Below, piece after piece: positions 2,620-55,977 of a stretch of 64,000 bases of DNA. Source of the DNA: Ylistrum balloti (lineage: Eukaryota). The stretch is from assembly GCF_031769215.1 (NCBI RefSeq), contig NW_026782197.1, positions 248,001 through 312,000 on the forward strand. The letters run 5' to 3'. The notes beneath the pieces are model-generated. The model had not been told where the DNA came from and did not search any database. It saw only the letters and a program-made list of their open reading frames with translations. The translations under genes and the position numbers were made by a program. Within the stretch, counting starts at the first letter, position 1, and every line of letters starts with the position of its first letter.

Positions 2620-3114
2620 ATAGGAATTAAGTAACTGAAGCAGATCCAGATAAAAACATGTTGCTTTGCTTTGTCTGTCTGTCCATCCTTTTGTGTCAAC
2701 AGTTAAGTAAAAAGATCATGAAACTTCTCATTTTCTGTCGGTCCATCCTTCTGTGTCACCAGTTCAGTGATGACCATGAAATTTGGCTTTGTCTGTCTGT
2801 TAATCCTATTGTGTCAATAGTTAAGCAAGGACCATGGTTTTTACGTTTAACATTCAAAGAAGATGTGCAGTATACTGAATTCTCGACTGTGACCCCTTTG
2901 ACCTTTGTAAGAATTTAATGTCTGAAGCATAACTTTGCTTGCAATTTAAACAAGGACCATGGAACTTAATGTATATACATTAATCATACTAATATGATGT
3001 GCAGTGCACCAAATGCAGGGTCTGAAACCTCTTAATTATAGAGTTATTGCCCTTTGTTGAAATTTTGTTTTTTTGGGGGGGAGCATTCATCAGTTTTTTT
3101 TTTACTGATACTCC
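2620..3114 (+). mobile_element. Degenerate Helentron/HINE-like non-autonomous element (same family as 52175-52520)
   Basis: GTCY-type microsatellite stretch near the 5' end. Shares GTGCAGTGCACCA and AGTTA(T/C)TGCCCTTTGTT blocks with the 52 kb copy, and has a small 3' hairpin (CATCAG...CTGAT). Confidence 0.5.
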
Positions 3115-9000: not shown

Positions 9001-9123
9001 TAGATATAGTTATGGTCGATATATATTTTATTTCAATTATGTAACATAATGTAATATAGCAGTTATATGTATTTCTGCAGTCTTGTGGGAAAATTTTATG
9101 TTTATGTCGAAGATTCTCAGTAG

Positions 9124-9705
9124 TCTGGCTGGGGGAGGGGGTTAGAAGGTCAGATGAGGTGAGGAGTAGGGGGTAATCTGGCTTGGGGAGGGGGTTAGAA
9201 GGTCAGATGAGGTGAGGGGTAAGGGGGTAATCTGGCTGGGGGAGGGGGTTAGAAGGTCAGATGAGGTGAGGGGTAGGGGGGTAATCTGGCTTGGGGAGGG
9301 GGTTAGAAGGTCAGATGAGGTGAGGAGTAGGGGGTAATCTGGCTTGGGGAGGGGGTTAGAAGGTCAGATGAGGTGAGGGGTAGGGGGGTAATCTGGCTGG
9401 GGGAGGGGGTTAGAGGGTCAGATGAGGTGAGGGGTAGGGGGGTAATCTGGCTGGGGGAAGGGGTTAGAGGGTCAGATGAGGTGAGGGGTAGGGGGGTAAT
9501 CTGGCTGGGGGAAGGGGTTAGAAGGTCAGATGAGGTGAGGGGTAGGGGGGTAATCTGGCTGGGGGAAGGGTTTAGAAGGTCAGATGAGGTGAGGGATAGG
9601 GGGGGTAATCTGGCTGGGGGAGGGAGTTAGAAGGTCAGATGAGGTGAGGGGTAGGGGGTAATCTGGCTGGGGGAGGGGGTTAGATGGTCAGTTGAGGTGA
9701 GGAGT
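9124..9705 (+). repeat. G-rich minisatellite, 53-55 bp unit, about 11 copies, G-quadruplex prone
   Basis: Unit ATCTGGCTGGGGGAGGGGGTTAGAAGGTCAGATGAGGTGAGGGGTAGGGGGTA with four G4-G6 runs. Confidence 0.95.
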
Positions 9706-9976
9706 ATGGGTTAAATCCCATTTCAATCCTGAGGGGTAGAGGGGTAAAGCTAGTATTAACAGTCAGAATCAAGGAAGTTACGTAAAATAAACCAGCCAAA
9801 GAATGTCTGCACCTTTACGTTGGCATCATGTAGTAGATTTCTCGGATTCACCGTTCTAGTAGTTTTTGTCAACAATTTCTAAAAATGAGTGAACATTTTA
9901 TTTAATAGAAGTTTAGTTGTCATTTTCTGTACTGAAATATTCTGTATAATCATTTTATTTTTTTTCAATCTTTCAG

Positions 9977-10059
9977 GAAATTCAAGATTTTGACGATAAG
10001 CTACGACTCCTGATTCAGCAAGACCTTAACGATGCCAATAATTTTGATGACCATATAAG
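9977..10059 (+). CDS. M28B-like gene, first recognisable exon ([27 protein letters not shown])
   Basis: Polypyrimidine tract plus ttcag acceptor and AG|gtaatt donor. Open frame, phase 2 fits the next exon, and it resembles the helix at the start of the PSMA ectodomain. Confidence 0.75.
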
Positions 10060-22000: not shown

Positions 22001-25000
22001 TGAAAGGCTAAGGAACATGACTATTTGTGTCTTATATAATGTCCTTTCTTGACAGCAACATCCCTGCTTCCCAACTCAATGGTGTTTACATGTCACAGTT
22101 GATTACAAAGTGTTGGCAGTTCACAAATAGCCTCATAACAAAGGCCTTTGAAAGATGACAGATAACTTTTATGGTTGTCATGATGATTTCATTGGTAAAT
22201 ATGATATGAAAGTTGACATGTTTAATGGCCGATGGTATGCTTAGTGCTTTCGTTCTTGTTTATTTTATTCTCATAAGGGAACATAATATTACAGAAGCAG
22301 AAGACTCTAAATCTTCTGAAACACCTGGTCTTGTTCTCTTTGTACTATGTCAAAGGTCTCTGTGTACATCTTTCTTTTTGTCATTTTGCCTTCATTTCAA
22401 TGAATTTACGTTTCATAACAACCTTCTGTTGACATAGTTTCTTTATAGCTTTGTTATGTACAAATTGGTACACTCTCTCAAATAACCTCAACTAAGGGAG
22501 ATAACTACATGTGCTACATTTGTGTCCCCAAACAATGTAGCAACTACCACTTAGGTATCTTACCTTAGGGGAGATAACTCTTCGCAAATGTTGAAATGTT
22601 AATTTTTCGATCTGGTTGTTCTTTCAGGGTAAACTAGTCTATGCAAACTATGGTACTAAGCAAGATTTTGAGGAGCTGAGTCTCATGCACATCAATGTAA
22701 CAGGCACAATAGTCATCATTAAGTATGGGAAAATCCATGCGGCCAACAAGGTAAGTTTAACTTGTACAGATCTTCTCACTGTGTCTTGTGATTTATCACT
22801 TTTGAATTAACGTTCTTCATTTGATCAGTTTTAGATCTTGTCTTTGGCTAACAGAACATAATCTGATATCTTAGATAAAAGTTTCAAGAATTTTGAGTAT
22901 TGCAGTTATTTCATAATTACCAGCTATATGGATGTAACTTTTGTTTATAAACCTCTACTAAATCTCAGTAATTATCTCATTCTTGTGTTCATTAAACCTA
23001 AGTTCTAATTTTGTTTGTGTTTTCTCATCAACATGCCTCAGAACAATTGACCTAGTTACTGGCCATAGACTTGTTCTGTTGACCTTTCCTCACCAGACCT
23101 CAGGACAATTGACCTAGTTACTGGCCCTAGACTTGTTCTGTTGTCCTTTCCTCACCAGACCTCCGAACAATTGACCTATTTACTGGCCCTAGACTTGTTC
23201 TGTTGTCCTTTCCTCACCAGACCTCCGAACAATTGACCTAGTTACTGGCCCTAGACTTGTTCTGTTGACCTTTCCTCACCAGACCTCAGAACAATTGACC
23301 TAGTTACTGGCCCTAGACTTGTTCTGTTGACCTTTCCTCACCAGACCTCAGAACAATTGACCTAGTTACTGGCCCTAAACTTGTTCTGTTGACCTTTCCT
23401 CACCAGACCTCAGAACAATTGACCTAGTTACTGGCCCTAGACTTGTTCTGTTGACCTTTCCTCACCAGACCTCAGAACAATTGACCTAGTTACTGGCCCT
23501 AGACTTGTTCTGTTGACCTTTCCTCACCAGACCTCAGAACAATTAACCTAGTTACTGGCCCTAGACTTGTTCTGTTGGCCTTTCCTCACCAGACCTCAGA
23601 ACAATTGACCTAGTTACTGGCCCTAGACTTGTTCTGTTGACCTTTCCTCACCAGATCTCAGAACAATTGACCCAGTAACTGTTAAGTGGATTTGCTTATG
23701 ATTGAGCCACCAGATATTGGCAGACTTTTCAGGGTTTGGTTCTATTTAGGAAATAAAAATATTCAGTCCTGTCCTCTATAGATTGAACCTAATTGATATT
23801 TTGATTTCTCTGTAATGAATTCCATAAAGTTAAGCGAGTAAAGTAAGTGGATTTTATGGGCCCCATAGGCCTTTTACTCTATACACAAGTAATGAATTAT
23901 CAGAGGAAATTATTCCAGATATTACCTTGTTTGGAGTCACGGAGATTTAAGTGAACCCGGGGTAGAAAACGGAAATTCATTAATCCCACCCTAACATTTT
24001 CATCATCTGATTCTGTGGATCATATTTGGTTGTCATGGTAACTGCATGTCAATAAATCCAAACAAAGGCAGTCTGTCATTCAAATTCATTGTTTTTGGTC
24101 ATTAACTCTACAATAGACGTGAAATCAATGCCAGGTAATTTTACAGCTGATGACTTTGAGTACTGAGGCTCCCAAGGGTTGATGAAAAAAAATTTCAGTC
24201 TAAGGTTTTAGATGAAATTTAAAACTTTGAAGTATTTTTTCTCGGTCAACAAAATAATATGTGTAGATGCTTAACCGTTTTTTGATTTTTTCAGAGAATA
24301 TTTGTGATTTTCATTATAATTAAATTTCCACACAAGAAACACATTAATCAGCTTGATACTGGCCTCGGGTAAATATTTTCCTGTGTCCGATGGCTTGGAA
24401 TTCATTATTTTGTCACGCAACATTTGTTTTCACCTTTTTCGGATTTTATCACACATTTTTATTGCCATGTAAATCATAAAAGGATGTGTGACCTCCTACT
24501 ACTTGTAGAATCGTTAAGATTGGCTAATTCAGAATGGATATAAAACTATGACTCAGAAAAAAAACATTGATTTCTCTGCTGAACTATTTTGTTGGGTGTG
24601 TGATTCTGATGTCGTAAACTTTGTGAATAATCAAGATACTATTATTTTGCACATTATACCAATACGATTGTCTATAGAAGATTGTGTTGTCTATCAATGT
24701 TATGTTGTCTATCAATGTTATGTTGTCTATAAAAGATTGTGTTGTCTATCAATGTTATGTTGTCTGTAAAATGATGTTTTGTCTATAAAAGATTGTGTTG
24801 TCGATCAATGTTATGTTATCAATCAACATTGTGTCATCTACAAAATGTTGTGTTGTCTATAAAAGGTTGTGTTGTCTGTGTGGTTTGTAATGTTGTATGA
24901 TGTGTTGCCTTTAATTTGTCATGTTATCTTTGTCAGTTTTGTTGTCAGTTTTCCCCCCTGAAGCATGATGTTGTTACCACAATATCGTCTCTCAAAGATC

Positions 25001-40000: not shown

Positions 40001-43000
40001 ATTCGTCAACTTTTCATTTAAACAACTTCTGAAATACCGAAAGGCGTAGAGTTATCATATCACATATAGTCCTAAGGTTTGCCCTGTGCTCATGCGTGCC
40101 ATTAAACATCCAATTTTTTACTGGCTGATTTGCTTTGAATAAATTTAGAATTTAAAGTAGGAATTCCTTAATTCAATTTTCTTGTCATTTGTCAATTTGA
40201 AGGTTTCTTTAAGTTTTGTTTTGTTTTTTCCATTCACTCAAAATTGAATTAACCTGGTGTAAACTATTTAGGAACACCATGGAAATGCAGTGCAGACAGA
40301 ATGGTTATCATTTTCAAGTGAAATATTGATCTACTTCTATATATCTGAAAAATGGTGATACTTCTATTTATTTTAAAACCATCATACCTATCTATTTATC
40401 TAATTATTACTGCTATTTATTTCAAAGTGGAGGTAGTACTTATAATTATCTAAAAAAAAGTTGGTACATAATTGTGTACTTCAATTTTAAAATGCTTATA
40501 CGTCTGTTTATCTGTAGAAAAAAAAGTCTGACAAAATGGCTGTCTTTCATGTTTGTAGATTGTGACATTGTAATGATTGTCAGAAGACATTTACAATTCG
40601 TTGATTTTGAATATTTATAGATGGTGTGTACAGAACTCCGCCAGCCGCAGACTGTTATCCCAGAATTCCCTCGCAGCCGATCAGCTACAATGATGCAGCC
40701 GACTTGATGAGGTATTATCTGCATGTAGCCATAAGTTGATGAATTTTACATTAATCCTAAAACCCTTTGATAGTGACCGACATGTCCAAAGTAAGCAGTT
40801 ATTTTAGAGTTGAAGAATTCAGTATTAGTAGAGCCATGTTCGTACACCAACTGTTTTCACCAATAAAGACAATTTCCCGGGGGAAAAACAGGTACAGTTC
40901 AGACAAATTTTCTGATGTACTTTCAGGCATATCTTTGGTACTGCTTTTGTAACATAGAAAAAGAGGTGAAAATAAGAGGGAATTTATGGTCTCAACAGAG
41001 GTACGTTTTAGGCACATTGTGGAATATACATTCTCCATTGAACATACCTAAAGTGTGCTACTTGTGTTCATGTTGAGGAATACCCTAAAAATACCTAAAA
41101 TGTGCCTCCTTGCTCTCTTGTCAGGGTGTACATAAAAAGTACCTATTATGTACCTCATGTGTCTAAAATGTGCCTCCTTGCCCTCTTGTCGGGGTATACA
41201 TAAAAAGTACCTATTATGTACCTCATGTGTGTAAAATGTGCCTCCTTGCTCTCTTGTCGGGGTATACATAAAAAGTACCTATTATGTACCTCATGTGTGT
41301 AAAATGTGCCTCCTTGCTCTCTTGTCAGGGTGTACATAAAAAGTACCTATTATGTACCTCATGTGTGTAAAATGTGCCTCCTTGCTCTCTTGTCAGGGTG
41401 TACATAAAAAGTACCTATTATGTACCTCATGTGTGTAAAATGTGCCTCCTTGCTCTCTTGTCAGGATGTACATAAAAAGTACCTATTATGTACCTCATGT
41501 GTCTAAAATGTGCTTCCTTGCTCTCTTGTCAGGGTGTACATAAAAAGTACCTATTATGTACCTCATGTGTGTAAAATGTGCCTCCTTGCTCTCTTGTCAG
41601 GGTGTACATAAAAAGTACCTATTATGTACCACATGTGTCTAAAATGTGCCTCCTTGCTCTCTTGTCAGGGTGTACATAAAAAGTACCTATTATGTACCTC
41701 TTGTGTCTAAAATGTGCCTCCTTGCTCTCTTGTCAGGGTGTACATAAAAAGTACCTATTATGTACCTCTTGTGTCTAAAATGTGCCTCCTTGCTCTCTTG
41801 TCAGGGTGTACATAAAAAGTACCTATTATGTACCTCATGTGTCTAAAATGTGCCTCCTCATTCCTAAAATGTAGTTCAAATATTAAAAACCAAATCTTAA
41901 AGCAAAAATATTTAGTGATATCATGACCACACATTGGGTATTATACCTAAGTAACGTATATACATTGTTATTGTAGATACCTGAAAGCGTTCAATACCCG
42001 CCAAAATACACGTCTCAACAGTCACTGATTCCTGTGACTTAAATCACATCCTTCAAACTTAAGGATGATTAGGTCTTATGCTTACAGAGGCAAATTTTCA
42101 CATGAATATTACAATGTGGAATTGATTAATTAAAATTTCGATGTTCTTTTGTAAATTTTTTCGATCTGACACATATACATGTTTACTTAGCTATACATAT
42201 ACACAGGATATGCCACTGAGTCTGTCATGAACTGTTCACTTTTTCATGTGAAAATGGAATCAAGTTTTTGTTTGTAATGGCATTTCTGTTCCTTTTAAGG
42301 TGTAGGCGGCATCAATTATAGGCCAGTAGTTTTCAGCAGTTTATAACGGGAAATACTGAAAAGAGCAATAGCGTTTGTTTATGTTTTGTTAAACATTTGA
42401 TGTCAGACCTCGTTAAGAACAATAAACAAACAAACAGACACGTTGGTCACCATTTACATCTATGTTTGAGGACAGAATGTTAAAATCTTACAGAAAGGGA
42501 AGATCTTGTGACGAAATAGAATGTAGACATGATAACATTTCCACCATGAAAGTGACAAACAAGACCATTCAGCATAACATGCCAAGAATGCACAGATGAT
42601 GAATTAATTCTAGACAGTGATATTTGATAGACCCGACGCATTCAATAATAGTGATATTACTAGGCTGGCCATATAATTATATTAATATATTACACAGTGT
42701 TTCATTACATGACAATGAAATGAAACTCTAAGGAAGAAATGTAATTGAATTAAATTATGTAAAACTTGTTTGGCAGATAAATGTGCTTTTGCCATGACCA
42801 ATGTAAAATGAACACCTGCCAAAAAAATAAAGTAAAAAGCTCCAGTGACTAGCAGTGTAGGAAATCATGTTCTGACAAAATGTTTTCTTAGAACTAGGTC
42901 AAATTGACCTACTTTTGGTACACAACACACTGCCTCACTGAGGTAGATCTAATCTGGTTATAGTGTAAAGTTCTAGTTACAAGTAGATGTGATCCATTTA

Positions 43001-46000
43001 GACTTTTCCTCTGATGTACAGATTTGTGCAAAAAGTGAGTATAATTTTCCCCCCATGTTATTTCACTTCCGGGTTCATTCTTAATGTTCAAAGGTCAAAA
43101 TGAAGGTCAGAGTGACCTACTTTTTATACATGACACACTACATCACCTAGGTGAAACCTGCACAGAGTATGAGATTCTAGTGACAAGCAGTATAGGAAGG
43201 CACAGCCCAGACAACATGAAGTGCAAAAGGAATGTAGAACACAATACCTTAGCCCCATGCCATCCTGTTTCCCCACGGGTTAACTGGGTTAAACAAAGAT
43301 TAAGTATCAGTCGTTTAAACTTATATCATATTATTTACCGTGATTATTTAATTGCAATCAGAAAATGCAGTAACATTTATCATTCTATTGGTTTAAAGTA
43401 CAAATCTATGACTAATATAGGACTGTACAATAATGGAAATGCGAGGACAAAGAGCCTATCAAGTTATGACCTGTGTTGGACATATTATCGTTTAAAAATT
43501 CTTCAGAAATGTCATGGAAAATTTCAATACTTTTCCTCATTTTTTAATTTTCAAAAGGAAGTCACTACATTTCTACATCAGAAATTACCTCACTGACTTT
43601 TAAGTCTGAACCTAACTGGAATGTCACATTGATAACACATTACTGCAAAATGTTTATTGGCATTAAAACTGTTAACAAATTTTAAAAGATGGCCTCAACT
43701 TTCTGATTCTTACCTTCTATCCTACTGCTTCATACTGACTCTTCTCTCAAATCAGATTTTATTTATTATAGTCAAACGAAAATATTGATCACATGAGAAG
43801 TAGAATGTAAACATTGACACAGTGATAATGTTGCACATTTTTTCATTTGAGTTTTTCTAAATGTCATAAAGTAATTTCCAGAATGTATGATATTTCATCG
43901 ATCTTTAACCCAGTGGTTTTGAATTTAATGAATTTCTCATGGATCTACTTTGATTTAATGTATAACATATTATGAATTACAAAGAGATACAAAATGTGAC
44001 CTTGACTTTGAACCCTTAGACCTTACATTTAATCGGACATTTCTCATATGATTTTCAGCTCCTCTAGGCCGATGGGTGTTTACGGTAGCAAATGAACAAT
44101 ATATAATCTGTTGTTGTTCTGATATCCAATACCAATGCCAGTGGCAATCTTTTGATTTGGAACTTTAAATTGTTTCCAAGAAATGTATATTTAGCACAAA
44201 TTCTGACTTTTTGTCTGTATTCTATCATCCATATACATCGATCATAATCCTAATCAATACTATCACTTTTTGTCTGTTGTCTGTCCATCATCCGTCACAC
44301 TGCCCTATTCCTCATTACCCAGTACTGCAATCAGCTTTGGTTTGTTGTCTGTCCATCATCCGTTTACATTAATCATAATCCTTATTAATGCAATCTATCT
44401 TTAGGTTGCAAGAGACAAAGTCTCAAGTGACCTTTTGCTATCGTCTTTTGTCTGGCGTCATCCGGCATCTGTCATGCATCATAAACAATTTTCATTTTCA
44501 ACTTCTTTTGGATAACCAAAAGGCCCAAGGTGTTGGTATTGAGCCAGTAGTATGCTGGGATGAAGTGCTACCAAGTTTGTTCAGTTGAATTACCTTGACC
44601 TATTTTGAAGGTCACAGGGGTCAAATATGTGAAAATGTTTTAACTACTTCTTCGCAATAACTCAATGACCAAGGGTCATGATATTAGGCTAGTAGCATGC
44701 TGGGATAAAGGGCTAATATGTTTGTTCAAATGAATGACCTTGACCTTCATTTATTGGGTTACAGGGGTCAAATTTGCTAAACTAAAATGACAGACAATGT
44801 TATCAGTACAGTTGAATCGATAATTAAGCCTTCAAACTTAGAAACAATAAAAACTTTGTATAAATTAGTTCTGTTCTGTCTGCCCTAATGTTTTGACTGA
44901 TGAACAGGTTCTAAAACTGTCCAAAGACCTGAAGACCTCAGGTCACTGTTAAGGCCTGTGAGCCTCTCATTATCTGTCGGAGCATTCTTATTGATATATG
45001 AATAAGATTAAGGAATTTCGATTTGCACAATCATGTTTTAACATAACATGTTCCGTGCAAAAATCACAAAAATTAGATTATGACTGGAAAATCTATAATT
45101 TCCGTATCTTATTGCTTCAATTATTCAACAGACAAAACAGAATTGCATGTGTACTAGTGTTATCTTTGAGGGGTGTAGTGATAGATTAGATTTATTTCCT
45201 AACCACAATAATGTTTTCAATATCTAGTTCATTTAAAGGAATGATTTCACATGAGCTCACAAGCAAGGTGGCTTTTGTGAATAGATGTAAGGTATTATGG
45301 GCAAACAATGTTTCTTTTTGTTTATACACACATTGAAGTGGTTAGACCATCATATGGAAAAAGCATTGGAAGCCATTTTGACGGAATGATAAATTATTTG
45401 CTGTACATGTAAAAACAGAACAGGTGTTAAACCTTGTAATGATCAACCCTTATACCTTGCTTTTTCAATATAATTTTTACCTGCCAAGCTCTGTCATTTA
45501 TATCAGCTATGAATACTATAACTAGACAGTTGAGTGCTTCAATAACACATCATGGTGTGACATAAAATGCTTAACTGTGACTTAAACCCATGATTCTATT
45601 CTATTATTTAGTGATGCCCAGGGGACAAACACATAACCTGACGTCAAGGGATGGCCTTAGTATCAGACAATGGAATGATTTGTATTAACACTAAAGAGTG
45701 ATACCATATGTTTTAATACACATGGGCTTATTAAGAAACATAGCCTTATTCCAAGATAATTATGGATCATTACATATATGTCTTGTACTAATAAAACCTA
45801 GAGGTATATAAATTTAGAAAACATAAAATTTTAGATAATTAGTGGAAATATGTATAACTTTGATCTTATTTTTACAGGAATATGGGAGGCCCTACGGCTC
45901 CTAATAAGTGGTTTGGTGGACTAAACATAACCTACAAACTGGGACCAGGTTACCTGGACGACAGGTAAGTAAAACATCACCTACAGACTGGGACCAGGTT

Positions 46001-49000
46001 ACCTGGACGACAGGTAAGTAAAACATCACCTACAGACTGGGACCAGGTTACCTGGACGACAGGTAAGTAAAACATCTCCTACAGACTGGGACCAGGTTAC
46101 CTGGATGACAGGTAAGTAAAACATTACCTACAGACTGGGACCAGGTTACCTGGATGACAGGTAAGTAAAACATCTGCAGACTGGGACCAGGTTACCTGGA
46201 CGACAGGTAAGTAAAACATCTGCAGACTGGGACCAGGTTACCTGGATGACAGGTAAGTAAAACATCACCTACAGACTAGGACCAGGTTACCTGGATGACA
46301 GGTAAGTAAAACATCTGCAGACTAGGACCAGGTTACCTGGATGACAGGTAAGTAAAACATTACCTACTGATGGTTGGAATGTCTATAATGATCAGAATAA
46401 TTAAACATTTATAAATAATATCAGAATTTTCAAACATCTATAATTATCACTGTTTGTGTATCTGTAGTTATCAGAATTTTCAAACATCTATGATTAATAC
46501 CTGTTTGTGTTTATTTCAGAACTGTTGAGTTAACAGTAAATAACAAAAATGACAAGCGTAATATTTCCAACCTGATAGCAGTGATAGAAGGAAAATATGA
46601 AAAAGGTGAGGTCTGCTAATGACTCTTAATACTGTAAAAATACTCACTGGTGTCCATATTGATTTTTTATTCATTTCCATCCAGAGGAATTTATTTCAAA
46701 CAAAGCCAGAGGAATTTGGTTAACTAGATGAAAGAAAAGAACACTCATCTAAAAGATGCAACAAAGATCATACAAAGGGGTGATAAGATACCACAGTATT
46801 CTCTCTGTCTGTCTCTTGCCCAAAGGTCACCTCCCTACAAAGGTCACCTCCCTACAAAGGTCACCTTGTCACCTCCCTACAAAGGTCCATTATGAATGTA
46901 CTTTGAACATCAAGGTCAAGGCCATGCAAGGTCACCTTTTCTATATGGAGAAAATCATCAACTGATTCAATTAAAACACTGTGCAACTTCATTCTTTCAT
47001 GGAACTCGGTCAAAATTTACGCAGTGGTTAAGTATGAGTATGCTTTGGACATTGTTCTGTTTCAGGGGTCAAAGGTCAAATCCATGATCACCTTTGTTAG
47101 TTATAGAAAATTATCATCTGATCCAACACTGAAACAAATTTTGTTTGGTGGCAGGGGCATTTATGTCTCACAGACACTTCCTGGTTTTCTGTGTTTTTAA
47201 AGGTTTCGTGTCTGTCCTGTGTCTGTCTCCTGCATCTTCTGTCGTCTATGTTTCCTCCTGTCTGTCCATCCTGTGTCAGGTTGTCTCCCTTTCTATTTGT
47301 TCTCCTAATCAAGTTTGACATACTGTGTTGACATAGAGGAATCAGTGTTGGGGACATTTTCCCTTCTGTTTGTCTAGGATTACGATCCCTCAGTGCCAGG
47401 GGAGTAATGGGACGCCTTCATTGATCCTGGCAACATCCTGATTGACTTTGAGAGTGTATAAGAAATCAGGTCATTTAATGCTATAAATTCACACCACAGC
47501 TGTTTGATCTGATGTCTAGACAGTCCAGGACATTAAGTAGTTAATTTAAGAAGTTAACATTTTCAAGTTGTATAGATTGAATTAACCCCGAAATAGAAAC
47601 TTTCCTCAACCTTTAAAAGATTCATATATGGTCATTATTTCCTGGTTTTGCTGGAAACTAATGACCTTAAAGTGTCACTGTGGGTATTTAATGATTTTGT
47701 AGAATGATTTGCCTCGCTGATTAAAACTTGGCCTCACATTCTCAGACTTTCACCCTTTCTATTACTGGTTTTTCCTGGGGATCCTTCTTTCAGGTGTAGA
47801 CATTACTTTCCAGAAAGATATAATTGACTTTGTGAATAAATAGTTCTGGATATTTTGGTATCAAATTGTTATATATATCATTGGTACAGTACATTTTAGT
47901 GGTGTGGATATTTTTCACAGACACTTAAAGTATACACACCAAACTGACAACTCCCACTTTATGTACATTTATGTTTCAGATAAATATGTTATTGTGGGGG
48001 CACACATAGATTCCTGGACTAAAGGAGCCGTAGACGCAGGGTCAGGCTACGCTGTTATCTGGGAACTGGCTCGTGCATTTACATCCAAAGTGGAAAAAGG
48101 TAAGCAACAGCACATAAGACTGACTAAAGCAGGGTGTGTACAGATATAAATATATCAGGGATTTTACCAATATCAACATAACTGGGTTTGAATAGGTCAG
48201 AATAAATATGTCAGGGTTTGTATGGACATAGATATGTCAGGGTTTGTATGGACAAAGATATGTCAGGGTTTGTATGGACATAGATATGTCAGGGTTTGTA
48301 TGGACATAGATATGTCAGGGTTTGTATGGACAAAGATATGTCAGGGTTTGTATGGACATGGATATGTCAGGGTTTGTATCGATGTAGGAGTTTGTGTAGC
48401 ATCCACCATCCAGCGTCATCTTTTCCACTTAAACAACTTTGTTTCAATAACAGACAGATGAAATGTCATGGTATTTGACTGGTGGGTTGCTGGTATGAAG
48501 CCTGACAAAGTTTGCCAAAAGAAATTACCTTGACCCTTATTCAAGGTCACATTGGTCAAATTTGTTAAAATCTTTAAACAACATCTTCTGACTAACCAAA
48601 AGAAGCATGGTATTAGGTTGATAGGTTGCTAGAATGAATCCCAACAGAGTTAAAGTGACCTTGATGCTTATTCGAGGTCACTGGAGTTAACTTTGTTAAA
48701 ACTTTTTAACAATTTCTTTTGACTTATCAAAAGGGCAGAACCATGGTATTTATCTTTAAGGTTCATAAGATGAAGCCTCACAAAGTTAGTAAAAAAAATG
48801 ACCTTGGACCATATTCAAAGCCAAAAGGATCAAATTTGGTAAAACATTTAAACCGTGTTTTTCAAAAACTGCAGAAGCATGGTATTTGCTTGATGGATTT
48901 CAAGGATAAATCCCAACAATGTTTCCAAAACAGAATGATCTTGACCCTTTTTCAAGGTAACAGGGGTAAAATTTGTTAAAACTTTAAAAAACAATTTCCT

Positions 49001-52000
49001 TTGACTTATCAAAAGGCACAGAAGCATATTATTTGGCTTAAAGGTTCTAAGGATGAAGGCTAATGGAGTTTGCGAAAAAAAAAAAAAAAAAAAGAATGAA
49101 CTTAAACCATATTCAAAGTCACAAGGGTCCAATTGTCGAAACTTGTGAGAGAATTTTTCTGGCTAATCAAAAGTCTGAGAAGCTGGATATTTGGTTGAAA
49201 ACTGTTTGTAAGTCAAAGCTGACAAATTACAAGAAAAAAAGAAATGACATTTGCCTATAATCCAGGTGATAACTGTCACCATTTAGACTCGAGTATAAGT
49301 AGCTGTTTTTTGCATAAATTCCCACTTTCCATGCCAACGGTGAACATATTATATATATTTATGATGAACAGTGGTTCTATTACTGTATAGCATTGAATAC
49401 CAGGTGAGCGATGCAGGCCCATTGGGCCTGATCTTGTTACTTACATTCAGACAATGCTAATGTCAGGTTCATCTTAGGGAATTATGGTGTCACCCATGTC
49501 TCTCTGCTCCGTCCCTGTCCTAATCATTTTGAAATCTAGAGAATATCACAACATGTTTGGTTAACCTAATAGTATCATAACATTTAGTTAAACCCTTTTT
49601 TTACATTGGTTTTGGTAGGTTGGCGTCCACGGAGATCCATTCTTTTTGCATTGTGGGATGCTACAAAATACGGTCATATTGGTTCATTTGAATGGGTACA
49701 GGTATGTATAGAGTCAGCACAGGAACACATCCCTGTGGAGCAAAATTGTCACAGTGTCCAGATCTATCTCGTTGTTGGTGTAGATTTCAATCCAAGTCAG
49801 AATATCTAGTTAGAGAAATTCTTCAAGAACCAACATCCAGTTCAGTTAATATGCATGTCTAGGTTCCACAACTACATTCAGAGGGATCCTCCATAGTAAA
49901 CAGAGCTATCTTAAGAAATAATAAACAAAAAAAAAAAATAAATAAATAAATAAAAAGGGGAAGCAACTCTTGTATTCTACATTCATTTATGTCTGGTTGC
50001 CACCATCAGGGCACAGCCTACATATTATGGTTGGATTTCATGAACATTTAATAAACATAGTTAGCAGTAGGTAACAGATATTATGAGTATAACATGTAAG
50101 AGCTTTGAAAAGGGACACAACTCTTACTGTATTGACTGCCAGTGATGTGATTGAAAGTTTAATAATTTAAGGTGCTGTATGAGTCTAAATAAAATGGATA
50201 AAATCTCACTGATGCAAGATAACTTTTAAAATTCACACAAATTGAGTCAAGGTATTGGAGATTACCATAAAAGATGTTATAAAGGAAAATGTATGTAAAA
50301 CATGTAGATGATATTTGTTATTAATTTTACAGGAGTATGAAAAACAGTTATTGACAGGAGCTGTAGCTTATATAAACCTGGATGCAGTCATTAGAGGTAA
50401 GATATATATGTAGGGTAGTGAATATCTACTTTTTATGTTGTATGGGATTTAGATCAAAAGATGTTGTGTTATTTTGCTTTTATCATATTAGGATCCATTA
50501 TCTGAGGTGAGATTGAACCTCACACACTACTTCAAAATAAGATGATGAGTTTTGATCCCTTATCAGATGGTGGGCTGTTCAAATTGCTGTCATCTGTCCT
50601 TAAAACTCAGAGTTTAAATCTTCAATGCATTGCTTAACAGATAACATAAGGAATGGAAATAACCCACCTGTTAGTGATCTTATCACCATTTGCAGGTGAA
50701 TCACGTATATGTTATGTAAAGATGTTTTGGAAGCTAATGTATAGGAATGCTGTGTCTGATTTCACTGCCAGTTGAGTGTCTAACTGAAATCTGACAATAT
50801 AATGATGTTTGGTGATCAAAGTCTGGCGACAGTTGTGGGCAGTGTATATGATGAATCATTTATCAAATTAAAGAAAAAATGATTTATCTGTTGATTCAGA
50901 CCACTCCCAGCAGGAAAGCTTGAACAGCTAAGTGACAATCACAAGTTTGCTGAAGTTGGGTTGGTTCACTTGACCATTTGAGTGGAAATATTTTTATTAG
51001 TGTGAGTGTATTGACAAATGAGACGTATACCTGTGGTTCAGGAACTTCAGCTTATATGGAAAGTTTTTGAAATTTGTAAACTTTGATTCAGAATTTCATC
51101 AGGCCACTTCATTGGCCCTGTTTATCTTTTATAAACTTGGTTCCTGATAAATTTGAACACCCTGGTGTATGCCTTCATTTTCATCTTTACAGGTAACTAT
51201 TCTTTTTCTGCTGAAGCAAGTCCACTGTTATATTCTGTCATCAAAACTGCGGCCAGTCAGGTACCCTGTGTCGACCCCGACTACCATGATATGTCTGTTT
51301 TACAGATGTGGACCAAGAAGTTCCCAGACCTAACCAACAGTACACAGCCAAGGTAGGGGGAGTCAGGTCCTTCTATTTTATTGTAGTTTGGGGGAGGCAG
51401 GTCTTTCTATTTTATTGTAGTTAGGGGGAGGAAGGAGGGTTGTAGTATACCAGCATCAGAACTTTTAACCTTGTTTTTAGGGCCCTGCATCGCGATGCAG
51501 GTGCCCTATAGTAATCACCTTGTTATTCATAACATATACCACTCTGGTAAAGAGAACCTATCATTACTGTGATTGGTTGAATGTAGTATGCCAAGAGTTC
51601 TTAGTTGAAGGTAGATAATAACCAGTTGGTTATAATTTATAGAAATTTATATTCAGATAAAATTGTCTTGTTTTTGTTCACTTACTGAGCACTATACATA
51701 CACAATGTAGTGAGTTGTGTTCTGATGTACAGTTGTAATTATACAGGATCAAAAAGACGTTAAACTACAGAAAAATTGTCCATAGTCAATAAACATATTA
51801 AGGGTTAATTCTATTTATAGTGCTGATAAGGAATTGTACATGTCATTATTCTATACCTGTAGGATCTCATTTTTACAGGATCTTTCCCTTGGAAGGTGAC
51901 AGTGACCATTCTCCATTTTACTATTACCTGGGTGTACCTTCATTTTCACCTGCATACACCTTTAATGTAAAGGTAAATGAAATTTAATCAGTATTACAGT

Positions 52001-55000
52001 GACTGTACTGCAACTATTTTTTACAAGTGTTCTTAATTAATGCTGATCAGGTCTGGCTAAGTATATTGAGGTCATGCTAACACTCATAAGGCACTAATGA
52101 TATTGGTTTATGATAATCGTCGAGGTAATTGTTGACATTATATTGGATTACAGCAACCTTTCTTATTATGTTCCTGGAAGGGATAGCATATAGTTACCGC
52201 TTTGTCCATCCGTCTGTCTGTCCGTTACAATTTTGTCCGGAGCTTAACACGAAAACTATAAGAGGTATCAACATGAAACTTCATACTTGGTAGATAAATC
52301 TCAACAATGAGAAGTGCAGTGCACCAGAATCATCTTTTTCTTTTGCATAGTTCAAAAGTTACTGCCCTTTGTTATTTTTCATACTTGAATGTTTGTCTGG
52401 AGCATTACACTAAAGATAGATCTCAACAAGAAGGAGGACAGTGAACAAGAATCATAACTCTCTTAATGCCTTTGTTATTTATCACGCTTAAATTTTGTCC
52501 AATACGGGAAGCATAACCCGTCTCTGATGGCCCTTGTTTACAAATGTGTCGTCATTTTAACATACCTGTACCAAGTGTGGAAAGCAGAAGAAATTAGGAG
52601 TACATTGACAATATATTTTTGTTCAGATATGTGCATAGTTTGTTTCACTGTAATCGATTAACAGAGGAAATTAACTTTATAGTATCTCTTCGGTTTTTAA
52701 AATGCTCAAAATGGTTATATCGTCGAAATTGTTGTATAAATGTAATTAAAGACCAAGGCAGCATTGTAGAATACAAACAATTTGAGTTATCTTGAACACA
52801 TCCCTGACAGTCTTTTCAAATGTTCACTGGATCTGTTTTAGATAACTTATTATTACTCAGCATGATTAATGTCTAGCAAATTGTATTGTGTATCATTTGA
52901 ATTGTGCATGTATTAACAGATGTGTTTTTTCACCAACTTTGTTATCAATTCTGTCTGTCTTTGGCCTTTTTGAATTTGAATGAATTAATGAATGAATTAA
53001 TGGATGAATTAAGTAATTTTCAAGCATAATACAGTTGGCTGTCTAAAATGCGTAAAAATTGTAGATAAATTAGATTTCATCAGCATTCACCACTGTTTTA
53101 AATAGTTAAAACTCTGATTGAAACCAATTAATTTAATCTGTCACAGCTCTACAAGAATCTACCCACTTACCCAGCCTACAGTACACTGGAGGATACCATT
53201 AACTATCTACAAGTGTTCATTGATCCCAGAATGAAACTGCATGAAACTGTCTCCAAGGTTGTGTCCGATGTTATACTCCGACTCGCAGACAGTGCCATCA
53301 TTCCATTTGACATACAAAATTACATCAGCATTTTCGAAAGTGGAAAAATTTACTTGCACTCTTTGAAATCTGTCTTTGTAGTTGCAAATGTCAACCTAGG
53401 TAAGTCTAGATGATGTAGAAATCAAATTGTTGTGTATAAAATCAAGAAGAAATAATATTAGTTTGTTGAATTGGAATTTTTGTAAAAATTAATGAAGTAT
53501 TGTCAATTTTCAAACTTTAATGTCAAGTTGATTAAGTGTAAAACCGTACCATGGAATTCGGCGACGTAATAGTTATTTATGATTATTGTATTAACAACTC
53601 TGATTTGGAAATGCCTTTTTTAATTTAATGAAATTTTTTTTCAGATACATTAATTTCAAGAATTGATGATTTCACAAAAACCGTCGTCACATTTTCATCA
53701 AATATTACAAATATAGATGTTTCTAAATTAAAGTAAGTACATTTTCCTATCACTGATTATAATTATATGATACACGATAAATCAGTTAGTAAGCATATTT
53801 TGTTTGTTTCACTGATTAAAAACAGTCAAAGGTCTGTCATATATAGTGTATAAATAAACCAGTATTTCCAGTCATGCATTGTACATCAAGTTAAAATATA
53901 CTTTCCTTACAAATGACCTCCCCATTCTGAGATGACTTGACTGTTCATGGCTAACAAAAGAATTGTTTTTCTACATCAGGATGAAATAACTAGGGAATAT
54001 AGTATTGCCCTTGGCTATGAGCATATAGTTTAACACATATTTGACATGTCCTGTTCTAAATCAGGGTCATAGCTTTAGAACCTGTAAAGGTGTTTTTTTT
54101 CGTAAATAGCACATTTATGTATAGCATCATGTTCTACGAAGAAATTTGATAATTTGTGCGTATTCATCAAACAATTATATTTATATACAAGTGTAGGAAT
54201 GTGGCATTCCTGTCTGTGAGATATTGTCTGATGTGATTCTTGTTTGTATGGTAGTATGTTTTTATAAGTGATACTTATATAGGTATTAATATCTTCTATG
54301 TTTCAGTGAATATGAAATACATCATCTTAATCACAAACTCATGCAGGTACCACGGGTATTTATAGTAGACAAAGGGTTACCTGGACAGTCACAGTACAGG
54401 TAGGTCATCTACAGGTACCACGGGTATTTATAGTAGACAAAGGGTTAGCTGGTCGGTCACAGTACAGGTAGGTCATCTACAGGTACCACGGGTATTTATA
54501 GTAGACAAAGGGTTACCTGGACAGTCACAATACAGGTAGGTTTTCTACAGGTACCACGGGTATTTATATTAGACAAAGGGTTACCTGGACAGTCACAGTA
54601 CAGGTAGGTCATCTACAGGTACCACAGGTATTTATAGTAGACAAAGGGTTACCTGGTCAGTCACAGTACAGGTAGGTTATCTACAGGTACCACGGGTATT
54701 TATAGTAGACAAAGGGTTACCTGGTCAGTCACAGTACAGGTAGGTCATCTACAGATATCACGGGTATTTATAGTAGACAAAGGGTTACCTGGACAGTCAC
54801 AATACAGGTAGGTTTTCTACAGGTACCACGGGTATTTATATTAGACAAAGGGTTACCTGGACAGTCACAGTACAGGTAGGTCATCTACAGGTACCACAGG
54901 TATTTATTGTAGACAAAGGGTTACCTGGTCAGTCACAGTACAGGTAGGTCATCTACAGGTACCACGGGTATTTATAGTAGACAAAGGGTTACCTGGACAG

Positions 55001-55977
55001 TCACAGTACAGGTAGGTCATCTACAGGTACCACAGGTATTTATAGTAGACAAAGGGTTACCTGGACAGTCACAGTACAGGTAGGTCATCTACAGGTACCA
55101 CAGGTATTTATAGTAGACAAAGGGTTACCTGGTCAGTCACACTACAGGTAGGTTATCTACAGGTACCACGGGTATTTATAGTAGACAGAGGGTTACCTGG
55201 TCAGTCACAGTACAGGTAGGGCATCTACAGGTACCACGGGTATTTATAGTAGACAAAGGGTTACTTGGACAGTCACAATACCGGTAGGTTTTCTACAGGT
55301 ACCACGGGTATTTATAGTAGACAAAGGGTTACCTGGTCAGTCACGGTACAGGTAGGTTATCTACAGGTATAAAGGTTTACCTGGACAGGTACTACTCATA
55401 TATATAAATTAATATTATTTTCAAAAATTTATGTATCTTAAAAATAAAAGTATGTGGATATACATAAAAATAATTCTGTGTTGTTAATTGTGTAGTTTGT
55501 GATGTAATTGTAGAGTGTTTGGTGTATATATATATACACTTCTGTCTTTTTCTGTTTTGAAAATAAAAAAAAAATCTCTCAGATACTAAATTCAACTTCA
55601 TAACTCTAAGAAGGCAATCTCCAAACTACCAAAATACCTGATGTATTCAAACGTATACATATTTAATTGTGTATTGAGATTGAATGTGATGTATCTGTGT
55701 TGAATAGAAAAATTTTTTTTTTTTGCTGTCTTCCTGGTACCTTTATATTGACAATGTAAATAGAATTGATATTCCCTGTTACAGAAACATTTTAATGTCA
55801 CCACACCCTGAGGATCTCAACACACCACAAGTGTTCCCTGGGATCGCAGCGGCACTCAAAGATGTTATCAGTGATCAGAACTGGTTACCAATGAAAGAAC
55901 AAATCTCTTATTTAATCATAGCTTTACAACAGGCCACAGACTTATTAAGTGACAGCATTCTCGGTGAAACACTCTGA
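9977..55977 (+). CDS. Spliced gene, 5'-incomplete: GCPII/NAALADase-like (peptidase M28B, PSMA/TfR family) protein, probably catalytically inactive. 17 exons, 2073 nt, about 690 aa plus stop
   Basis: Manual join 9977-10059,17672-17812,21778-21907,22628-22750,29368-29551,40621-40711,45878-45964,46520-46605,47980-48099,49619-49701,50333-50396,51193-51352,51879-51972,53147-53399,53645-53732,54307-54399,55785-55977. All introns are GT-AG and all phases are compatible. Family motifs occur in the expected order: [58 protein letters not shown]. Confidence 0.93.
10995..12200. repeat. Minisatellite, 39-40 bp unit, about 30 copies
   Basis: Unit TTATAGCTTTTAGGTGTACAGAGGGGTGTGGCCCAGAAGG. Confidence 0.95.
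12931..13630. repeat. 15 bp two-variant minisatellite, about 46 copies
   Basis: ATAAACTCAGCTTTG and ATAAAGTCTGCTTTG units interspersed. Confidence 0.97.
15264..15770. repeat. Minisatellite, about 54 bp unit, about 9 copies
   Basis: Unit CACAGGGGCCTGTAACAATGTTTCTGGGGATGAGGGTCTGTATGGTATACTAT. Confidence 0.95.
16690..16880. repeat. Degenerate tandem repeat, about 3 copies of 65-70 bp
   Basis: Recurring AATAAGCCC...CTACTTT...CAGATACTATATCATTGTC. Confidence 0.7.
17328..17505. mobile_element. 178 bp MITE with 10 bp TIRs and a 5 bp TSD
   Basis: CAGGGCTCTC (17328-37) and GAGAGCCCTG (17496-505), flanked on both sides by ACAGA. Confidence 0.75.
17672..17812 (+). CDS. Exon 2 ([12 protein letters not shown]...[22 protein letters not shown])
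   Basis: tttcag acceptor, gtaagt donor. Homologous to the PSMA PHLAGT...YDVLLSYPN segment. Confidence 0.9.
17840..20585. repeat. Composite minisatellite: runs of a 25 bp unit interrupted by a 61 bp extended unit
   Basis: CACTTCACCTCACTGGATAGCAAAT, with or without CTTGATATTCCAGGTTCAGTACATATATCCTTACATAC. Confidence 0.97.
20620..21680. repeat. 38 bp minisatellite with two TACAACTT half-units. Core 20790-21400, degenerate flanks
   Basis: Unit AAGTACAACTTCCAACTCTAAATACAACTTTACCTTTT. Confidence 0.9.
21778..21907 (+). CDS. Exon 3 (TNPNSVVV...[15 protein letters not shown])
   Basis: ttttcag acceptor, AAG|gtaact donor, PFNAFSP motif. Confidence 0.92.
22628..22750 (+). CDS. Exon 4, PA domain ([14 protein letters not shown]...[10 protein letters not shown])
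   Basis: ctttcag acceptor, gtaagt donor, LVYANYG motif. Confidence 0.95.
23035..23675. repeat. 62 bp minisatellite, about 10 copies
   Basis: Unit CCTCAGAACAATTGACCTAGTTACTGGCCCTAGACTTGTTCTGTTGACCTTTCCTCACCAGA. Confidence 0.97.
24675..25150. repeat. Degenerate 18 bp repeat (24675-24870) followed by 3 copies of a 70 bp unit (24945-25150)
   Basis: GTTGTCTATCAATGTTAT units, and TTCCCCCCTGAAGCATGATG... at 24951, 25021 and 25091. Confidence 0.85.
27095..28620 (+). mobile_element. Helentron/HINE-like non-autonomous element with internal 120-180 bp core repeats
   Basis: 5' AGTCATCTGAC...AGATGAC hairpin and repeated core (CAAAATGCTACTC...GAATGGATTTCAACCAAATTTGGTCTGAAACATCA). Long blocks shared with 33225-34478. 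Confidence 0.65.
29368..29551 (+). CDS. Exon 5, PA domain ([18 protein letters not shown]...[11 protein letters not shown])
   Basis: cctcag acceptor, gtaagt donor, YSDP and GDPLTPG motifs. Confidence 0.95.
29790..30040. repeat. Degenerate tandem repeat, about 40 bp
   Basis: Recurring GTTACATGGAATTGTCTCCCCTTCATT. Confidence 0.7.
30154..30400 (+). mobile_element. Possible degenerate tRNA-derived SINE
   Basis: A-box-like TTGCTCAGTCAGTTGAGC, B-box-like GGTTCAAGA at about 30206, and a core-like GTGTTTTTCAGCAGGGCATTTTATCCCTTGTGCTC. Confidence 0.35.
30706..30828. mobile_element. 123 bp Tc1/mariner-type MITE
   Basis: TA|CAGTGATC ... GATCACTG|TA: TA TSD and CAGTG termini. Confidence 0.65.
31290..31760. 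repeat. Degenerate tandem repeat, about 85-90 bp period with sub-repeats
   Basis: Recurring CAACACCTGATGT...AATGACTGTAGTCTAGTT...CACTAATA. Confidence 0.75.
33225..34478 (+). mobile_element. Second copy of the 27 kb HINE-like family, 5' end missing
   Basis: Shared AAACCCTACTCCT...TCATACCTGG block. The 3' end has GTCAGATGACT (reverse complement of the 5' motif of the 27 kb copy), then the GCCCATGGCC hairpin and CTTGTT. Confidence 0.65.
34490..35910. repeat. 57 bp minisatellite, interrupted by unrelated sequence
   Basis: Unit CATGAGCCAGTGATCTGGTCACATTCTCCATATTTGGAAATGAACCTCCCTATAGAA. Older degenerate copies lie at 33105-33220. Confidence 0.9.
36036..36325 (+). pseudogene. Fragments of a Tc1 transposase C-terminus interleaved with satellite
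   Basis: Pieces translate as [17 protein letters not shown] / LN / [15 protein letters not shown] / IALQEEWQR / RSM / VIDVR / GHT, matching the Tc1 WP..SPDLNPIE..W...ALQEEW...SM...VI.A.GGHT.Y tail. Confidence 0.75.
36160..38045. repeat. (TA)n-containing satellite TTGTATACAGGTAAGATTTTCTGGATTCTGG(TA)n. Main array 36520-36975, resuming at 37935-38045
   Basis: Tandem copies read directly, flanking the Tc1 remnant. Confidence 0.9.
36974..37934 (+). mobile_element. Tc1/mariner remnant: left end plus N-terminal two-thirds of the transposase (ATG 37266), with a premature TGA at 37452 and a frameshift near 37792
   Basis: HTH region, GRPR linker, FTDESRF (first D), GGGSVMVWG and YRDEIL motifs. Truncated before the second D. 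Confidence 0.92.
38770..39420 (+). mobile_element. HINE-like non-autonomous element, degenerate
   Basis: GTCGGTCCATCTGTCC microsatellite start and core repeats related to the 27/33 kb cores (GGGCCCGAAAAGGG, GGTCTGAAACATCA). Confidence 0.5.
39915..40070 (+). mobile_element. 5' end of a HINE-like element
   Basis: CTCACCTGGCCCAAAGAGCCAAGTGAG hairpin followed by (CGTC/GTCC)n. Confidence 0.6.
40621..40711 (+). CDS. Exon 6 ([29 protein letters not shown])
   Basis: tttatag acceptor, gtatta donor. Matches the family P.IP..PI.Y.DA motif. Confidence 0.9.
41090..41865. repeat. 68 bp minisatellite, about 11 copies
   Basis: Unit AAAATGTGCCTCCTTGCTCTCTTGTCAGGGTGTACATAAAAAGTACCTATTATGTACCTCATGTGTCT. Confidence 0.97.
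44395..44975 (+). mobile_element. HINE-like element (TGACCTT/AGGTCA core family)
   Basis: 5' hairpin region, CGTC stretch, core TGACCTTGACC...GAAGGTCACAGGGGTCAAAT, and 3' AGGCCTGTGAGCCTCT. Confidence 0.55.
45878..45964 (+). CDS. Exon 7 ([28 protein letters not shown])
   Basis: tttacag acceptor, gtaagt donor. Matches the family MGG..P..W.G.L...Y..GPG motif. Confidence 0.92.
45923..46367 (+). repeat. Tandem amplification (46-49 bp unit) of the exon 7 3' end plus splice donor, 9 donor copies
   Basis: Unit GTAAGTAAAACATCACCTACAGACTGGGACCAGGTTACCTGGACGACAG. The first copy is coding sequence. Confidence 0.97.
46520..46605 (+). CDS. Exon 8 ([28 protein letters not shown])
   Basis: tttcag acceptor, gtgagg donor, I.N.I..I.G motif. 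Confidence 0.9.
47980..48099 (+). CDS. Exon 9 ([22 protein letters not shown]...), contains the His377- and Asp387-equivalent Zn ligands
   Basis: tttcag acceptor, gtaagc donor, G.H.DSW and D..SG motifs. Confidence 0.95.
48205..48380. repeat. 26 bp minisatellite, about 6 copies
   Basis: Unit ATATGTCAGGGTTTGTATGGACATAG. Confidence 0.95.
48480..49440 (+). mobile_element. HINE-like element with about 120 bp core repeats and an intact 3' end
   Basis: Repeated TGACCTTGA...TCAAGGTCAC...CAAATTTGTTAAAA core. Ends CAGGTGAGCGATGCAGGCCCATTGGGCCTGATCTTGTT. Confidence 0.65.
49619..49701 (+). CDS. Exon 10 ([27 protein letters not shown]), catalytic EE replaced by TK
   Basis: tggtag acceptor, gtatgt donor, WRPRR.I.F..WD motif. 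Confidence 0.95.
50333..50396 (+). CDS. Exon 11 ([21 protein letters not shown]), contains the Asp453 equivalent
   Basis: tttacag acceptor, gtaaga donor, VAYIN.D motif. Confidence 0.93.
51193..51352 (+). CDS. Exon 12 ([17 protein letters not shown]...NSTQP)
   Basis: tttacag acceptor, gtaggg donor, GNY......SPL motif. Confidence 0.92.
51879..51972 (+). CDS. Exon 13 ([31 protein letters not shown])
   Basis: tttacag acceptor, gtaaat donor, SD...F...LGVPS motif. Confidence 0.92.
52175..52520 (+). mobile_element. HINE-like element (same family as 2620-3114)
   Basis: GTCCATCCGTCTGTCTGTCCG, internal GTGCAGTG repeats, 3' GATGGCCCTTGTT. Confidence 0.6.
53147..53399 (+). CDS. Exon 14 ([17 protein letters not shown]...FIDP...[12 protein letters not shown]...), His553 equivalent replaced by Ser
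   Basis: tcacag acceptor, gtaagt donor, YP.Y.T..DT, F.DP and LADS.I.PFD motifs. Confidence 0.93.
53645..53732 (+). CDS. Exon 15, helical domain ([16 protein letters not shown]...)
   Basis: tttttcag acceptor, gtaagt donor, phases fit both neighbours. Confidence 0.85.
54307..54399 (+). CDS. Exon 16 ([30 protein letters not shown])
   Basis: tttcag acceptor, gtaggt donor. Matches the family N..LM...R.FI...GLP....YR motif. Confidence 0.92.
54344..55390 (+). repeat. Tandem amplification (68 bp unit) of the exon 16 3' half plus splice donor, 15 donor copies
   Basis: Unit CAGGTACCACGGGTATTTATAGTAGACAAAGGGTTACCTGGACAGTCACAGTACAGGTAGGTCATCTA. The first copy is coding. Confidence 0.97.
55785..55977 (+). 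CDS. Terminal exon 17 ([20 protein letters not shown]...[17 protein letters not shown]...TL*)
   Basis: ttacag acceptor, FPGI and EQIS.....LQ.A motifs, TGA stop. Confidence 0.92.

Follow-up and report, generated by a model that had tools for sequence, protein, structure and literature searches.

The locus considered here raises the question of whether a scallop gene annotated as a peptidase still encodes one. It lies in a 64,000-nucleotide stretch of the Ylistrum balloti genome (assembly GCF_031769215.1, contig NW_026782197.1, positions 248,001 to 312,000 of the forward strand; hereafter the window, numbered from its first base), in which a preliminary description had placed, at 47980-53399, an M28B pseudo-peptidase that has lost one zinc site and kept the other. 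The gene is already in RefSeq, but is annotated there under an enzyme name; the protein predicted from the window agrees with XP_060072483.1 (P0279 in our set) at every one of 690 residues. The explanation that we consider likely is that the product is a glycoprotein of type II membrane topology that has the complete GCPII/transferrin-receptor fold, encoded by a single-copy, expressed and strongly constrained gene, and that it is a pseudo-peptidase. The loss of activity would have been a single event that preceded the divergence of the living mollusc classes, independent of the losses in vertebrates, and would have left a dimeric surface binder with a lysine plug.

The two zinc ions of GCPII are held by D387, E425 and H553 (Zn1) and by H377, D387 and D453 (Zn2) (PMC8674901), and Glu424 is the proton shuttle (PMC10794815), in agreement with the ligand grouping and catalytic base given in the preliminary description. 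The five motifs on which that description relied are all present at the codon positions it gave. Three of them are in place: GAHIDSW, with its His (CAC, 48003-48005) at H377 and an Asp (48009-48011) at D379, and AVDAGSG, with the bridging Asp (GAC, 48033-48035) at D387, are both encoded by exon 9 (47980-48099, M28 domain), while YINLD, with its Asp (GAT, 50381-50383) at D453, is in exon 11 (50333-50396). The other two are altered. Exon 10 (49619-49701) encodes WDATK, with ACA (Thr, 49663-49665) and AAA (Lys, 49666-49668) at E424 and E425, and exon 14 (53147-53399) encodes YPAYS, in which Tyr 53177-53179 corresponds to Y552 and AGT (Ser, 53180-53182) to H553. When a 90%-identical scallop orthologue was aligned with GCPIII, Thr-Lys stood without a gap opposite Glu-Glu, and HMMER alignment of the 83-residue exon with solved chains (full-length 9hlw_A) placed the Ser opposite His553 of GCPII. 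In GCPII numbering the Zn2 ligands H377, D387 and D453 are thus retained, E424 is replaced by Thr, E425 by Lys and H553 by Ser, and the alignments uphold the earlier claim that the base and both private ligands of one site are gone with the other triad complete.

The changes extend beyond the metal ligands. Substrate recognition by GCPII involves R210, N257, Y552, K699 and Y700 (PMC10794815), and F209, N257 and L428 are among the residues that directly surround the ligand and the zincs (PMC10865363). At the five recognition positions the window protein carries A, H, Y, L and N: a His-Ala pair (22736-22741) in exon 4 (22628-22750, PA domain) lies opposite F209-R210, a His (29497-29499) in exon 5 (29368-29551, end of the PA domain) lies opposite N257, and a Leu-Asn pair (55816-55821) in the last coding exon (55785-55977, with the stop codon and the end of the TFR_dimer domain) lies opposite K699-Y700. 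The counterparts of T269 and Y272, encoded by exon 5, are retained. Exon 10 also places His (49675-49677) at L428 and Gln (49699-49701) at E436, and exon 13 (51879-51972) places Asp (51898-51900) at G518, Ser (51946-51948) at R534 and Ala (51952-51954) at R536. The full set of five zinc ligands that characterizes active GCPII/NAALAD2-type enzymes is therefore broken at E425 (Lys) and H553 (Ser), and the proton-shuttle glutamate has gone. E424 is by itself essential for GCPII activity; mutants E424A and E424M are termed inactive in the titles of their PDB entries. With E424 and the Zn1 ligands lost and the substrate clamp dismantled, no peptide hydrolysis by the binuclear mechanism would be expected. 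Judged on its residues, the protein is without each of the features of an active GCPII-type enzyme that were tested; it cannot on these grounds be a GCPII-type carboxypeptidase, and we infer that the activity has been lost. The non-catalytic reading first put forward is strengthened in that R210, G518, Y552, Y700 and K699, as well as E424, are not kept across molluscs.

The framework around this altered site is intact. Pfam domains PA, Peptidase_M28 and TFR_dimer were detected at residues 208-291, 388-594 and 655-772 of the RefSeq protein, and an AlphaFold2 model (mean predicted local distance difference test score, pLDDT, 89.2; predicted template-modelling score 0.86) contains a helix at 44-73 and has pLDDT values of 96-98 in the active-site region. 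In Foldseek comparisons the model matched GCPII with a template-modelling (TM) score of 0.92, a root-mean-square deviation of 2.4 Å and 35% identity, and TfR1 with a TM score of 0.89. On its domain trio and fold the protein is a type II membrane member of MEROPS M28B, the GCPII/TfR structural family. It shares with GCPII and GCPIII (PSMA, NAALAD2) the three-domain ectodomain, the fold and the type II topology, together with H377/D387/D453, D379, N451 and the calcium-site residues T269, Y272 and E433; it differs from them in the absence of E424, E425 and H553, in the replacement of R210 and K699, in the changes of G518 to Asp and E436 to Gln, and in a His-lined pocket. A canonical paralogue with all catalytic and clamp residues (P0298, 31% identity) is encoded elsewhere in the Ylistrum balloti genome and is also found in Pecten, Mizuhopecten, Argopecten, oysters, mussels, abalone and chiton. 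The RefSeq product name is identical for the two Ylistrum proteins, despite their 31% identity and the difference at the catalytic residues.

The substitutions are not peculiar to Ylistrum. Relatives had been obtained by phmmer with the largest exon as query against a library of 1.84 billion proteins, and named relatives across animals by querying a word index with the oyster orthologue; 32 mollusc orthologues (bivalves including the protobranch Solemya, gastropods, Octopus and the chiton Liolophura) were then aligned against 77 family members with the canonical H-D-E-E-D-H pattern. All 32 tabulated orthologues carry H-D-[S/T]-K-D-[S/N/G], except that one has Ala at 424. Lysine at 425 is invariant, position 424 is Ser in 26, Thr in five and Ala in one, and position 553 is Gly in 12, Asn in 11 and Ser in nine. 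Arg210, present in 76 of the 77 canonical members, is Pro in 28 molluscs and Ala in the remaining four; K699 is replaced in every one, and conservation at Y552, Y700, R534 and R536 is lost. Gly518 has become Asp in 27 of the 32 and E436 has become Gln in 31. By comparison, H377, D379, D387, N451, D453 and D520 are retained in 32/32, and the calcium-site residues T269, Y272 and E433 are kept in the clade. Histidine has replaced F209 in 30 orthologues, N257 in 27 and L428 in 23. To judge from this alignment, the loss is wider than was first seen, as the entire carboxylate clamp has gone and the pocket is re-lined.

Could these residues reflect an error of assembly or sequencing, or a pseudogene in decay? 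This is the least credible of the explanations considered, to the point of being negligible, and nothing was found in its favour. The Thr, Lys and Ser residues are also present in Mizuhopecten, Argopecten and Pecten, and between scallop species the key codons differ synonymously (ACA/ACT, AGT/AGC, GAC/GAT), as expected for residues under selection. In comparison with Argopecten dN/dS was estimated at 0.036-0.062, and in comparison with Pecten at 0.039-0.056; dS was about 0.7-1.2. The comparison loci were those of Pecten maximus and Argopecten, used in place of Mizuhopecten, for whose orthologue (P0153) no recorded DNA contig was found. In Argopecten irradians all 17 exons, and in Pecten maximus all 15 that fall inside the fetched locus, are present with identical lengths and AG/GT borders. 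Logan contigs from runs of three studies cover 47980-53399 and list no change at the key codons, their differences from the assembly being nearly all intronic; the six exons of this interval account for just two of those listed (49632 and 50389), both synonymous. Exon 10 is covered by DNA contigs of runs X1, X3 and X5, with the synonymous change at 49632 as its sole listed difference. No run is recorded as RNA, and X6 is labelled 'DNA?'; its contigs nevertheless skip the predicted introns exactly (50394 to 51191, 51350 to 51877 and 51970 to 53145) and so are transcript-derived despite the label. The spliced X6 contig begins in the exon 9 region and reaches just the last 30 bases of exon 10, so that the Thr-Lys codons lie outside its coverage, and X6 covers 53145-53233, including the Ser codon, with zero differences. 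Orthologues are likewise present as cDNA-length Logan/ENA contigs. The possibility raised at the outset that reads would restore Glu-Glu and His is thus answered by contigs of three studies and, for the Ser, by spliced contigs. The open frame and canonical splice sites speak equally against a pseudogene. A pattern fixed in 32/32 orthologues with dN/dS of 0.04-0.06 points to selective losses and not to decay, as the preliminary description had held; the gene most likely encodes a working non-enzyme and has been under strong selection since the mollusc classes split.

We propose a role for the dimer at the cell surface, as a binding protein or receptor. The ammonium group of the invariant Lys425 would sit at the former Zn1 position, pair with D387 and D453, supply the charge once given by the metal and so stabilize the emptied cavity; the former S1' pocket, with His at 209, 257 and 428 in most molluscs, could form a new and possibly pH-sensitive site for a ligand or a metal. 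In several separate lineages of the family, H553 is missing and one of the ligand positions carries a cationic residue (K387 in TfR1, K424 in Saccoglossus and Strigamia, R553 in a tick), a correlation that comes from few cases and is suggestive at most. The principal competitor, a possibility already raised in the preliminary description, is a mono-zinc protein in which H377/D387/D453 binds a single metal with a structural or catalytic role; a novel type of hydrolysis, for which one of the pocket histidines served as base, might then be supported. The invariance of the triad, D379 and N451 in 32/32 molluscs from the four classes sampled, and the confident modelling of the active-site region, are consistent with this. 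However, H377 and D453 are the positions most often retained in degenerate M28B members, including TfR1 (D453) and NAALADL2 (H377), and as they persist even in proven non-enzymes their retention may be structural. The adjacent lysine would also repel a cation, and the substrate clamp is gone. A further precedent is human glutaminyl cyclase, an enzyme of the same M28 fold that works with one of the two ancestral metal sites: it keeps the equivalent triad (H140, D159 and D248), yet that site is empty even with excess Zn or Co, which has been attributed to second-shell residues, and only Zn1 (D159/E202/H330) is filled (PMC11312887). The mollusc protein, in contrast, has destroyed Zn1 and retains the ligands of Zn2 only. 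The earlier remark that the cyclases keep the opposite site therefore holds for the metal that is bound but not for the ligands, both sets of which are kept (PMC11312887). We regard the mono-zinc alternative as possible but the weaker of the two and, reasoning from the residues, favour the lysine plug over a single metal in the kept triad.

The origin of the clade bears on two other alternatives. In a 58-row maximum-likelihood tree the mollusc proteins were monophyletic with support of 99 (99-100 over the trees built), matched the species tree, and had as nearest neighbours Lingula, the annelid Owenia, a pair from Strigamia, amphioxus and a Saccoglossus protein. Together with these neighbours they grouped with Holothuria-type proteins, TfR1 and NAALADL2 (Shimodaira-Hasegawa-like approximate likelihood ratio test, SH-aLRT, 94), separately from the clade of NAALADL1 and GCPII-like proteins. 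As a guard against long branches meeting, TfR1 or NAALADL2 was removed from ectodomain-only trees, and the remaining one still fell in the same clade (82-91). There is thus modest support for placing the molluscs with TfR and NAALADL2 within M28B; the two vertebrate families appear to belong to the same bilaterian subfamily. The Owenia and amphioxus X5 proteins and P0187, all within this clade, have an intact site, which makes the mollusc loss separate from those of vertebrates; at least eight transitions between intact and degenerate states are needed on the tree. On tree position, and with intact-site relatives from Owenia and amphioxus adjoining it, the mollusc protein is best regarded as an invertebrate case that arose independently in parallel with TfR and NAALADL2, one of the two origins that the preliminary description had offered.

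The other origin, orthology to vertebrate NAALADL2 with an inherited and already known inactivity, seems unlikely to us. The two proteins have similar lengths (781-795 amino acids), long cytoplasmic tails, a common 'IGY' membrane-helix motif, a similar G-x-IGS-x-EW motif, Thr at 424 and a non-catalytic site, and when TfR1 is left out NAALADL2 lands in the same 22-row clade. They are not joined in the free tree; forcing them together cost 11.3 log-likelihood units, which the approximately unbiased (AU) test did not reject (p = 0.196), the NAALADL2 branch being very long. The substitutions themselves differ: NAALADL2 has H, D/E, T, T, H and E at the six sites (in rodents, Thr at both 424 and 425, His at 453 and Glu at 553), whereas molluscs have H, D, S/T, K, D and S/N/G. 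NAALADL2 is also far more degenerate, in that in the rodent protein Pfam still detects TFR_dimer but neither M28 nor PA, and identity is about 24-26%. Since relatives from annelids, amphioxus and the myriapod clade whose H-D-E-E-D-H site is intact stand nearer to the molluscs than NAALADL2 does, separate losses are implied. The suggestion of a NAALADL2-like orthologue thus keeps the resemblance and an AU test that does not reject it, and loses the shared substitutions.

Several observations weigh against our preferred explanation, that of a surface binder arising on the TfR side of the family with a lysine plug and a His-lined pocket. The three pocket histidines are not universal, heterodont clams having T/N/S at 209/428 and the chiton Q at 428; the placement on the TfR/NAALADL2 side rests on SH-aLRT values of 82-94% from quick searches with long branches; the RGD motif by which TfR1 binds transferrin through its helical domain has no conserved counterpart (scallop has R-I-D at the aligned residues, oyster E-I-D and octopus A-M-D), a weak test as the fish TfR1 used lacks RGD too; and molluscs have Val or Leu for the Tyr of a Y-x-R-W/F motif in the cytoplasmic tail. 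The tails of the clade, which lie outside the window, share a motif of Y/V-[ST]-[RK]-W, acidic residues and D-I-x-Y, followed by G-Y-I-I-R-R ending the membrane helix; [YV]-[ST]-[RK]-[WF] was seen in the N-termini of P0153, P0131, P0024, P0120, P0028, P0058 and P0238, and resembles the YTRF endocytosis signal and, with the helix motif, the IGY of TfR1. This likeness in clade relatives, the tree position and the proposal that a razor-clam 'NAALAD2' functions in iron handling (PMC12896564) are the case for a mollusc counterpart of the transferrin receptor in iron uptake, which we think very improbable. TfR1 is likewise a non-catalytic M28B relative with a lysine at a former ligand position (387) and no H553, but H377 and D387 are missing from it as well, its losses arose independently of those in molluscs, and it is about 26% identical to the mollusc protein. 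The absence of a conserved RGD leaves no link of the mollusc protein to transferrin, and the tail Tyr is missing from molluscs. The razor-clam protein, ScNAALAD2, has its helix at residues 7-29 and an amphioxus protein as its best hit, and so is probably one of the canonical paralogues; it was set aside as functional evidence for the clade (PMC12896564). A bolder form of the surface-binder proposal is that the clade is a dedicated mollusc receptor, fixed ahead of the divergence of the classes and derived from the peptidase lineage from which TfR also came, in which lysine permanently replaces Zn1, the triad holds one structural metal or none, and histidines lining the old glutamate pocket make it a pH-switchable site for a new ligand or metal. 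This we put forward tentatively, as a conjecture that we consider rather unlikely.

The gene from which these conclusions are drawn was assembled by tblastn guided by full-length relatives, with enumeration of splice junctions. It comprises 17 exons between 9977 and 55977 of the window on the plus strand, all with AG/GT borders and forming one open frame that closes in a stop codon; the window contains no N. The first of them by in-window numbering (9977-10059) encodes residues ~92-119 of XP_060072483.1, in the stalk, and is identical to it. Exon 2 (17672-17812) is likewise supported by the RefSeq identity, exon 3 (21778-21907) has the same length in Pecten and Argopecten, and exons 6 (40621-40711) and 8 (46520-46605) have the lengths seen in other scallops. 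Between exons 7 (45878-45964) and 15 lie the six exons, 9 to 14, of the interval first described (47980-53399), which is eukaryotic and intron-rich in character with a GC content of about 35%; contigs of X6 link exons 11 and 12 (51193-51352) and continue spliced into exon 13. Exon 15 (53645-53732), in the helical or dimerization domain, matches the RefSeq protein, and exon 16 (54307-54399) precedes the last coding exon. Residues 1-91 of the RefSeq protein, comprising the cytoplasmic tail and membrane helix, had no match anywhere in the 64 kb, and tblastn with the N-termini of 20 homologues, the Mizuhopecten orthologue and the RefSeq protein itself found nothing upstream of 9977. The reading frame is thus incomplete in the window and its first coding exon or exons lie outside; of the 'intact 17-exon ORF' of the preliminary description, the 17 exons and the open frame stand and the completeness does not. 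In Pecten maximus (L001, LR736853.1) the orthologue is annotated as two genes, P0281 and P0282, of which one, a 130-amino-acid 'uncharacterized protein', holds the stalk exon together with the tail and membrane helix, and the other is a 599-amino-acid 'NAALAD2-like' protein; a single gene has probably been split in annotation.

Repeats are prominent in and around the gene. An array of a 49-base unit (9.3 copies, 93% matches) at 45923-46367 begins within the 3' end of exon 7 and takes in its GTAAGT donor, so that each copy holds a potential decoy donor; the unit length is not a multiple of three, and repeated peptide hits were seen with tblastn. Similarly, a 68-base unit (15.1 copies, 93% matches) at 54344-55369 begins within the 3' part of exon 16 and takes in its donor, and the intron matching this array is about 2.5 kb in Argopecten (L002) and about 10 kb in Pecten maximus. 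Two intronic segments, 48523-48703 and 52143-52504, show contig depths of up to ~70,000 against ~30 in their flanks, with many internal joints, and are copies of high-copy interspersed repeats. The 11-kb intron 5 (29552-40620) contains a 124-amino-acid open frame (37485-37859) whose translation looks like a fragment of a Tc1/mariner-type transposase. Long tracts of low complexity and tandem repeats, in which GC and AT skew are strong, occur at 2000-6000, 8000-15500 and 34500-37000. They lie ahead of the first exon of the window and inside introns 1 and 5, and give rise to spurious long open reading frames.

A search of the literature library available found no paper on the mollusc clade or its active site, and a 2024 review of pseudopeptidases leaves M28 unmentioned; the oyster protein of a norovirus-ligand study, K1PUP1, is a different paralogue. 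Pseudo-peptidases are already known in M28B, and the general nature of the protein is unsurprising to a specialist. To our knowledge, non-catalytic relatives of GCPII have been known from vertebrates only (TfR1/2 and NAALADL2), and the route from binuclear peptidase to receptor has usually been argued from these highly diverged end points. The molluscs provide a phylum-wide and less diverged case (35% identity to GCPII), in which one metal site and the clamp have been cleanly removed with the other triad intact, and for which close relatives with an intact site are available as comparators. As the pseudo-peptidase and the canonical paralogue share a RefSeq name, studies of mollusc 'NAALAD2', such as the iron work in the razor clam, need to establish which paralogue is concerned. 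The clade is a tractable system in which to ask which residues govern occupancy by metal, what takes the place of a metal once its site has been emptied, and which ligands are bound. If the dedicated-receptor proposal is true, these proteins would represent a natural intermediate between a binuclear peptidase and a receptor.

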